Below are positions 11,396 through 11,477 of a stretch of 64,000 nt of DNA, piece by piece; the first letter of the stretch is position 1, and each line of letters opens with the position of its first letter. Location: the sequence record LC494302.1; one strand, written 5' to 3'. The notes beneath the pieces were generated by a model that was given only the letters and a program-made list of their open reading frames with translations, did not search any database and had not been told where the DNA came from. The position numbers and the translations under genes are program-made.

Positions 11396-11477
11396 CCGGG
11401 CGTATCTCAACGGTCTTCTAAATCGTCGTTAATCGAGTAACTGGAGTATGCAGGTTCGAGTCCTGTCGCCTGGGCCA
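11396..11477 (+). tRNA. non-canonical tRNA-Arg(TCT)-like gene lacking a D-arm
   Basis: Acceptor CCGGGCG/CGCCTGG + G + CCA; anticodon arm ACGGT-CTTCTAA-ATCGT only 7 nt after the acceptor; T-arm GCAGG-TTCGAGT-CCTGT. Confidence 0.7.

Follow-up and report, generated by a model that had tools for sequence, protein, structure and literature searches.

The window analysed here is a stretch of 64,000 nucleotides from sequence record LC494302.1, and comes from an Asteriusvirus jumbo phage; positions 11200–11700 (501 bases) match Escherichia phage SP27 at 100% and PBECO4 at 99.8% identity. We found that an element at 11396–11477 on the + strand is a new structural variant of tRNA, belonging to a large and mostly unannotated family. 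Judged from its sequence and that of its relatives, it is probably a functional phage tRNA-Arg(UCU) with rewired connectivity, acting as a decoder of AGA and AGG codons rather than as a decoy. The element is not truly D-arm-less: a D-stem-like helix surrounds the anticodon arm, and a D-loop-like motif takes the position of the variable loop.

Structure and detection of the element

An initial annotation, made from the letters of the window, had described the element as a D-arm-less tRNA-Arg(UCU)-like RNA. Direct reading confirmed the parts that it listed (the acceptor stem, a following G, CCA, the T-arm, the anticodon arm and a 7-nt TATCTCA spacer) and also its statement that the element starts 4 nt after a tRNA-Ser, the CCA of tRNA-Ser(UGA) ending at 11391. 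The description as lacking a D-arm proved essentially incorrect. Although no D hairpin stands at its normal site, the RNA has a helix that resembles a D-stem and covaries, together with a GG-A motif like that of a D-loop, the parts being arranged in a different order. The parts of the element are as follows.

11396–11402, + strand: acceptor stem 5′ strand, CCGGGCG, pairing with 11467–11473 at 7/7 positions with one G-U pair
11403–11404, + strand: UA, the equivalents of U8 and A9; UA in 131/131 members of the family described below
11405–11409, + strand: strand A, UCUCA, in the place of positions 22–25 of the D-stem 3′ strand, plus 26
11410–11426, + strand: anticodon arm, ACGGU-CUUCUAA-AUCGU, with a 5-bp stem and a 7-nt loop containing U33 and A37
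11417–11419, + strand: anticodon UCU, read directly
11427–11434, + strand: linker CGUUAAUC, joining the anticodon stem to strand B, an 8-nt form found in the window's subfamily only
11435–11438, + strand: strand B, GAGU, in the place of positions 10–13 of the D-stem 5′ strand
11439–11445, + strand: D-loop-like motif AACUGGA, read as A14 A15 C16 U17 G18 G19 A20
11446–11449, + strand: connector GUAU to the T-stem, with A11448 read as the equivalent of A21 and U11449 as U48
11450–11466, + strand: T-arm, GCAGG-UUCGAGU-CCUGU, with a 5-bp stem and a canonical loop
11467–11473, 11474 and 11475–11477, + strand: acceptor stem 3′ strand CGCCUGG, discriminator G73 and encoded CCA, read directly

Between strands A and B, U11405 stands opposite U11438 as a U·U mismatch, and A11409 is a lone nucleotide ahead of the anticodon stem. 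The linker is 3–5 nt long in most family members, and the rewired tRNAs range in length from 73 to 82 nt.

A canonical D-arm hairpin could not be placed between positions 9 and 26, just 5 nt separating U8-A9 from the anticodon stem. The Rfam tRNA model (RF00005) scored the element at 29.3 bits, barely over its gathering score of 29, its alignment dropping 15 model positions of the D-arm and placing 20 extra nt in the variable region. Beyond this borderline tRNA match, no family in Rfam 15 matched the element. ARAGORN called six tRNAs in the window, and the element at 11396–11477 was not among them.

Relatives were gathered from IMG/VR by two pattern scans. In the first, only the anticodon loop (CTTCTAA) and the T-loop were fixed; in the second, only a GUAA..UGGA motif beside the T-arm was fixed and the anticodon was free. 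An alignment of 63 diverse homologues (A2) was used to build a covariance model, R1, which matched the element over its full length (72.4 bits, E 1.7e-18) and which separates members, at 46 bits or more, from canonical tRNAs, at 40 bits or less. The scans and R1 together gave at least 131 distinct parsed members at at least 111 loci, and the counts given below for the family refer to parsed members. Because the parser accepted only sequences whose acceptor, anticodon and T stems were intact, the evidence in these stems lies in the variety of pair types and not in the percentage paired. Positions 11/24 and 15/48 were left free in gathering, as was the anticodon in the second scan, and the helix enclosing the anticodon arm was imposed by no filter.

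The family is large, mainly phage-borne and nearly all missed by standard tRNA finders: on 110 member-bearing loci ARAGORN found 882 tRNAs, which overlapped with only 7/130 members. The element itself is present in 24 Asteriusvirus records at 97–100% identity and, almost complete and at ∼89% identity, in the Salmonella jumbo phage 7t3 and in Felix O1-like and ∼110-kb Klebsiella phages; ∼243 phage records hold it nearly full length. The public labels are inconsistent, most copies being either unannotated or labelled tRNA-OTHER, tRNA-TERM or, in 121Q, tRNA-Leu(taa). Among the first 100 pattern matches in bacterial species genomes there were 12 members. The members in bacteria-labelled assemblies (loci L214, L241, L262, L272, L292 and L302) came from, among others, Bradyrhizobium spp., Rhizobium rosettiformans and several metagenome-assembled genomes, and each of six checked members from such assemblies lay inside a dense array of 10–25 tRNA genes per 8 kb. 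No published description of the rewired architecture was found in the literature searched, which included reviews of non-canonical, missing and viral tRNAs and had subscription journals outside its coverage.

The acceptor, anticodon and T stems covary throughout the family. All 7 acceptor pairs change on both sides, and compensatory changes occur at all 5 pairs of the anticodon stem; the anticodon loop is invariant in the window's subfamily and G53-C61 is kept in 63/63 aligned homologues. Comparison of the window with Felix O1, Roth37 and 7t3 reveals compensation at acceptor pair 2-71 (C2-G71 in the window, G2-C71 in the other three) and at three anticodon-stem pairs. A CCA is encoded in 60 of the first 83 members parsed. 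We also considered that a tRNA-Arg gene had been rearranged and was now decaying as a pseudogene, which would suit an Rfam score at the threshold and records that are mostly unannotated or inconsistently labelled. Set against this are the 131 distinct variants, in which every helix shows compensation and the anticodon-loop framework does not vary, and the high conservation among the 24 Asteriusvirus records, and we regard decay as extremely unlikely.

A helix encloses the anticodon arm

In place of a D-arm, the initial annotation had proposed an extra GTTA/TAAC hairpin on the 3′ side and an imperfect pairing of TATCTCA with TGGAGTA, and had suggested covariation among homologues as a check. 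Covariation was seen in the acceptor, anticodon and T stems but not in these additional pairings, which in the 63 homologues were 55.1% paired compared with 55.5% after shuffling, with covariation of 0.097 compared with 0.107. It is CUC and GAG that covary instead, corresponding in the window to the pairs C11406-G11437, U11407-A11436 and C11408-G11435, which enclose the anticodon arm.

Scored alone on A2, the enclosing helix was 100% paired, compared with 65% when shuffled. Its covariation was 0.807 compared with 0.122 in the shuffled alignment, and fell to 0.07 or less when the partner strand was slid by 1–3 columns. The family alignment as a whole gave a covariation of 0.90, compared with 0.20 after shuffling. 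Pair 24-11 was formed in 115/115 members (CG 36, GC 50, UA 25, AU 4), as was pair 23-12 (CG 105, GC 4, AU 4, UA 2), the composition of the latter being partly biased since the second scan fixed its G. Pair 25-10 was formed in 87/115 members, with a recurrent C·A, and the fourth position was mostly U·U. Within the window's subfamily (n = 23) the helix occurs as CUC/GAG, CUU/AAG, CGC/GCG, CGU/ACG and CAG/CUG, with UA 15, GC 7 and AU 1 at pair 24-11 and CG 18, GC 3 and UA 2 at pair 25-10.

These data bear directly on whether the element might after all be a tRNA without any D-arm, having an unpaired 7-nt connector and a variable hairpin of GUUA with UAAC, like metazoan mitochondrial tRNA-Ser(AGY). 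Adding the hairpin lowers the computed energy of this sequence from −18.8 to −20.4 kcal/mol, and its three inner pairs are present in 22/23 subfamily members. However, those inner pairs never vary in the subfamily, where the hairpin might still form, and U13, A14 and A15, its 3′ half, are equally conserved in many members without GUUAA. The outer pair is formed in only 15/23, and across the family the proposed pairings do no better than shuffled ones. A D-arm-less tRNA would also leave unexplained the conserved GG-A motif and the perfect covariation of CUC with GAG, the GAG being part of the loop that the hairpin would close. We therefore consider it very unlikely, and the mitochondria-like type that the initial annotation had raised is contradicted by the covarying helix and by the motif.

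D-loop motif and proposed fold

Strand B is always followed by A-A/G-(1–3 nt)-G-G-A, most commonly as AACUGGA, AAUUGGA or AAUGGA. The canonical phage tRNA-Arg genes of the same contigs have identical D-loops, with an A after GG in 38/40. The segment before the T-stem ends with the A at the A21-equivalent position in 130/131 members, and the next nucleotide is mostly U. At positions 15/48, 125 members have A/U, another 5 have G/C and a single one has G/G, a covariation like that of the 15-48 Levitt pair in normal tRNAs.

By analogy with normal tRNAs, the simplest account would be that strand B and the motif correspond to positions 10–21 and strand A to 22–25 and then 26, the D-loop leading straight to 48. 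In tRNA crystal structures, the residues joined by the new junctions (9-22, 44/45-10 and 21-48) are already neighbours in the L-shaped core. The rewired fold is plausible because each new junction links residues that are adjacent there.

In the proposed fold the chain would run from 9 to 22–25, 26, the anticodon arm, the linker, 10–13, 14–21 and then 48–49. The acceptor stem, T-arm and anticodon arm would form as usual, and CUC (11406–11408) with GAG (11435–11437) would form a short helix extending the anticodon stem, a pairing supported by covariation. This helix would take the role of the D-stem and AACUGGA...AU that of the D-loop, the D-loop-like strand giving A14 to U8, A15 to U48 and G18-G19 to the elbow with the T-loop, plus A20. 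The four helices and the core contacts of an L-shaped tRNA would all be present despite the rethreaded chain. The element would be co-transcribed with the preceding tRNA-Ser and cut by RNase P at 11396, with the encoded CCA as its 3′ end.

Arginine identity elements

Arginine anticodons were found in 127/131 members (UCU 76, ACG 23, CCU 16, UCG 9, CCG 2 and GCG 1). The scan in which the anticodon was free gave 72/77 arginine anticodons (UCU 33, ACG 18, CCU 13, UCG 7 and CCG 1), together with 2 GAU and 3 aberrant loops. A37 is present in 131/131 members, and the nucleotide after GG is A in 127/127 of those with an arginine anticodon. The discriminator is more variable across the family (G 50, A 41, U 37 and C 3).

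The bacterial arginine identity set consists of A20, C35, U/G36 and A/G/U73, and the isoleucine set includes U20 and A73 (PMC9976931). The element has all parts of the arginine set in its sequence: A11445 after G11443-G11444, C35, U36 and G11474. A11445 would thus stand as the A20 of the set at the level of sequence. Host arginyl-tRNA synthetase (ArgRS) would charge the element through A20, C35, U36 and G73, and the charged tRNA would decode AGA and probably AGG.

Three members have isoleucine anticodons.

L135:2428–2504, − strand: anticodon GAU
L097:2134–2212, − strand: anticodon UAU
L142:193–271, − strand: anticodon GAU

The nucleotide after GG is U in 2/3 of these, and the discriminator is A73 in 3/3. 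They look like an identity switch within the rewired scaffold, and the pattern at positions 20 and 73 would fit that expected of a charged tRNA, in what is a small sample.

Proposed decoding role

At 36 loci that also had canonical tRNA-Arg genes, 1/41 rewired arginine tRNAs duplicated a canonical anticodon. The duplication expected by shuffling was 13.3 ± 2.7, and 0/5000 shuffles were as low as the observed value of 1. One phage can hold several isoacceptors of the rewired design.

Ten other Asteriusvirus records (including UE-S1, G17, slurp01, Sharanji and JP4) have a canonical 77-nt tRNA-Arg(UCU) in the same slot. The flanks of the slot are nearly identical up to the tRNA ends, and the canonical and rewired tRNAs differ in their acceptor, anticodon and T stems; on this comparison the two are alternative alleles of one slot. 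According to the initial annotation, a normal D-arm in close relatives, pointing to a simple deletion, would count against the proposal together with an RNA that is not processed or stable. Formally, close relatives do have a tRNA with a normal D-arm here, but it is a distinct allele and not a deletion parent. A simple D-arm deletion from the sister allele was rejected, the alleles differing in all stems.

In the open reading frames (ORFs) of the window (34% GC), AGA makes up 26% and AGG 7.6% of the arginine codons. Both codons are rare in Escherichia coli. The SP27 record has six annotated tRNAs, all within the window, none for arginine and none at the element, and ARAGORN gives the same six. 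Reading the element as tRNA-Leu(UAA) or as a stop suppressor, following the 121Q and 7t3 records, was rejected: the anticodons would lie in the region of the linker and strand B, where there is no supporting stem.

A working AGA/AGG decoder is favoured because of the gap-filling, the canonical allele in the same slot, the demand for AGA and AGG and the absence of any other annotated tRNA-Arg in SP27. Of the two explanations offered by the initial annotation, these observations, the covariation of the stems and the arginine identity elements support the one in which the tRNA has been rearranged and reads the rare AGA codon. The other, a decoy for anticodon nucleases, is disfavoured by the filling of isoacceptor gaps and by the way in which position 20 switches along with the anticodon.

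More broadly, the element could be a non-decoding tRNA mimic, either one that serves as decoy or sponge against tRNA-Arg-targeting nucleases or sensors, with the anticodon loop as bait, or some other tRNA-like regulator. Its architecture is non-canonical and it escapes tRNA finders; phage tRNAs are known to counter tRNA-cleaving host defences (PMC12409363); and phage T5 has stable tRNA-like RNAs of unknown function, one of which resembles the family without its anticodon arm. However, the anticodons complement the canonical arginine set of the phage (1/41 duplicated, against the 13.3 expected), and this counts against a decoy because a decoy should copy its target and not avoid redundancy. The shift of the position after GG together with the anticodon, the canonical tRNA-Arg(UCU) in the same slot of sister phages, the retention of the discriminator and (in 60 of the first 83 members parsed) of an encoded CCA, and the possibility of several isoacceptors of the design in one phage all speak against a mimic as well. 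We regard a mimic as quite improbable.

Several observations weigh against the rewired fold and the decoding role proposed here. The enclosing helix has only 3 Watson-Crick pairs in the window, and RNAalifold run on the family predicted the three arms only, missing the helix because 2–3 bp are too short for this program. By nearest-neighbour calculation the element has −17.7 kcal/mol with the enclosing helix, compared with −18.8 kcal/mol for the three arms alone and −20.4 kcal/mol with the GTTA/TAAC hairpin; the competing models are less than 3 kcal/mol apart, and the energies neither favour nor exclude the enclosing helix. The minimum free energy structure of the single sequence is an unrelated fold, of a stability no better than that of shuffles (z = −0.38). 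The conserved GUUAA in the 8-nt linker of the subfamily is left unexplained by the rewired model, and the position numbers 10–13, 14–21, 22–25 and 48, like the L-shape, are taken from analogy. Conservation is partly built in by the scan patterns (GTAA plus TGGA, or the CTTCTAA loop) and by the parser's demand for intact stems. The link between A20 or U20 and the anticodon is drawn from only three isoleucine members. Finally, the sole RNA data are contigs of environmental metatranscriptomes or of unclear libraries, which may be derived from DNA.

Possible selection on the rewired topology

A refinement of the decoder reading, and not a replacement for it, is that the topology was selected as a counter-defence, the tRNA evading host, colicin-type or phage-encoded enzymes whose recognition depends on the canonical D-arm or core of tRNA-Arg. 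The design has spread widely and persisted over several arginine isoacceptors, very close phages carry either the canonical or the rewired allele in a single slot, and the 89% identity across unrelated phage groups suggests recent horizontal spread. Against this, neither a defence system nor a nuclease with specificity for the core of tRNA-Arg was identified, in an analysis that included no test for association with defence or anti-defence genes, and the restriction to arginine is equally explained by one tRNA-Arg ancestor and the reliance of ArgRS on A20 and the anticodon. A counter-defence function is on balance unlikely; descent from a single rearranged tRNA-Arg gene that was tolerated by ArgRS is a possibility as an alternative origin.

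Taken at its widest, the evidence would describe an unrecognised and widespread class of functional tRNA in which the chain is rethreaded in the L-shaped core, which arose in a phage tRNA-Arg, spread to all arginine isoacceptors and occasionally to isoleucine, is invisible to standard annotation and has a topology that may have been selected for escape from enzymes. We put this forward tentatively, giving it slightly less than an even chance.

Were the rewired decoder to be real, ArgRS, EF-Tu, RNase P, modification enzymes and the ribosome would accept a non-cloverleaf connectivity in ordinary bacterial translation, and not in a reduced organelle. Both tRNA engineering and ideas on tRNA evolution would gain a natural scaffold not available before. 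Phage annotation would be corrected, many phages, the model phages Felix O1 and the PBECO4/121Q/SP27 jumbo phages among them, encoding the tRNA-Arg isoacceptors that they seem to lack, and analyses of codon use and host adaptation in phages would be affected. The alternation of canonical and rewired alleles among near-identical phages is a natural experiment on the purpose of the design, counter-defence included.

Comparison with known tRNAs

In canonical tRNAs the order is D-stem 5′ strand, D-loop, D-stem 3′ strand and anticodon arm, whereas in the rewired tRNAs it is D-stem 3′-like strand, anticodon arm, linker, D-stem 5′-like strand, D-loop-like motif and T-arm. The nearest canonical counterpart is the tRNA-Arg(UCU) of UE-S1 (L001:492–568), which has the same slot and flanks and shares with the rewired allele the anticodon loop framework YUUCUAA, the D-loop AAYUGGA with A20 and a similar T-loop. 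The tRNA-Arg of T5 (L332:20774–20848, − strand) closely resembles the element in its T-arm and in the 3′ end of its acceptor, UAUGCAGGUUCGAAUCCUGUCACCUCGGCCA.

Metazoan mitochondrial tRNAs that lack the D-arm, such as tRNA-Ser(AGY/AGN), and the armless tRNAs of nematode mitochondria (PMC7609411, PMC4394434) likewise have no D hairpin and an anticodon helix that is in effect lengthened. The anticodon family of the former (AGN codons) matches that of the rewired tRNA by coincidence. Unlike the mitochondrial type, the rewired family keeps a covarying D-stem-like helix, G18-G19-A20 and a canonical T-loop, so that elbow contacts can probably form. It also differs in belonging to phages of bacteria, in having arginine and not serine identity, and in being of normal or greater length (73–82 nt).

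As in class II tRNAs (Ser, Leu and Tyr), the element has extra nucleotides between the anticodon arm and the T-arm, which explains both the variable-region insertion in the Rfam alignment and the tRNA-Leu label in 121Q. Class II tRNAs, however, have a normal D-arm and a self-contained variable hairpin, whereas in the element the extra segment is the pairing partner of the 5′ connector and contains the D-loop motif. The element is not of class II: it has no D-arm of the normal kind, and the GUUA/UAAC pairing lacks covariation support and is absent in most members.

Allo-tRNAs (with 8/4 or 9/3 acceptor branches), tRNA-Sec and tRNA-Pyl (PMC7609411) have altered helix lengths with the strand order unchanged. 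Like the rewired family, these and the permuted tRNA genes are departures from the cloverleaf that were revealed by sequence surveys. Cyanidioschyzon merolae has circularly permuted tRNA genes, in which the segments are in changed order. Permuted genes mature to a normal tRNA, whereas the ends of the rewired gene are the acceptor ends, and so the mature RNA itself would be rewired. The main text of a 2020 review of non-canonical tRNAs contains no word starting with ‘phage’.

Phage T5 encodes stable tRNA-like RNAs (RNA1, RNA2, RNA3 and RNAX) that are annotated as of unknown function and lie, like the element, in the phage tRNA region. The 5′ part of RNAX (L332:21433–21504, − strand; NC_005859 41432–41503) is 72 nt long and combines a 7-bp acceptor stem with a T-arm, an ACGG/CCGU helix and, immediately ahead of the T-arm, AACUGG; it scores 35 bits with R1. 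From these features it looks like a relative of the rewired family, one that could not decode because a 10-nt loop stands in for the anticodon arm. In the 40 kb of T5 examined there was no family member, only the canonical tRNA-Arg and the RNAX segment.

Two further observations concern RNAs that lie outside the family. A second rewired design, also with anticodon UCU, has a covarying 5–6-bp helix around the anticodon arm (CCCAC/GUGGG, CCCGA/UCGGG, CCUCC/GGAGG, CCUAC/GUAGG and others), followed by AAGGA or UGGA and the T-arm; it has no UA in the place of U8-A9 and is not detected by R1. It was seen at IMG/VR loci L015, L017, L040, L044–L046, L049, L051, L053, L054, L061, L074, L086, L088 and L118. 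Klebsiella phage Roth37 has a second tRNA-OTHER (L005:114–198) with a normal-looking T-arm, an aberrant 5′ half and no clear acceptor pairing; on the evidence of the alignment, it does not belong to the rewired family.

Transcription context and the upstream tRNA-Ser

Two features precede the element.

11264–11291, + strand: sigma-70-like promoter, GGGACA, 16 nt and TATAAT with TG before the −10, a pattern match only, with 10/12 consensus positions
11302–11391, + strand: canonical tRNA-Ser(UGA) with encoded CCA, scoring 60.1 bits with Rfam

By its motif, the site at 11264–11291 is the probable start of a transcript with tRNA-Ser, the element and downstream small ORFs. No terminator-like site was found on the + strand in the 10850–12000 region scanned.

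One contig, X1, covers 11230–11443, and thus tRNA-Ser and part of the element; it may be of DNA origin. A contig of the public run X2 joins 11393 to 11469, skipping the element, and is probably from a co-occurring relative with the canonical allele rather than from a deletion.

The anticodon stem of tRNA-Ser(UGA) (ACGGU/ACCGU, flanked by CA..CG; 11328–11346) nearly matches that of the rewired tRNA-Arg (11408–11428), and in 121Q the anticodon-stem regions of the two tRNAs are identical at 18/21 nt. In UE-S1, the sole sister with the canonical allele whose tRNA-Ser was read, the tRNA-Ser stem is different (CUUGU/ACAAG). The likeness may reflect gene conversion or a recombination tract reaching tRNA-Ser.

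Downstream HNH genes and other tRNA genes of the window

In four relatives an HNH endonuclease gene lies ∼10–20 nt downstream of the rewired tRNA-Arg: the Klebsiella phage (L005:1592–2101), Felix O1 (L004:1596–1943), 7t3 (L006:1600–2118) and an IMG/VR contig (L050:1074–1613). The Felix O1 match is weak, being below the Pfam cut-off (E 0.0081, 16.7 bits compared with 21.4). HNH genes made up 4/13 of the downstream ORFs tested and belonged to different HNH families; there is none downstream in the window. The rewired tRNA gene may have spread by homing. An obligate association with HNH homing endonuclease genes was rejected, as these lie directly downstream at 4/13 loci only and not in the window.

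Two other tRNA genes of the window, both on the + strand, were unusual. The tRNA-Gly(UCC) at 10200–10272, called by ARAGORN and annotated in SP27, is below the Rfam gathering score and has an anticodon-stem mismatch and an odd D region. A class II tRNA-Ser at 13128–13219 (Rfam 49.9 bits, no encoded CCA) has the loop CUACUAA and therefore the anticodon ACU, with A34, where GCU is the norm in bacteria and phages; AGU makes up 32% of the serine codons in the ORFs of the window.

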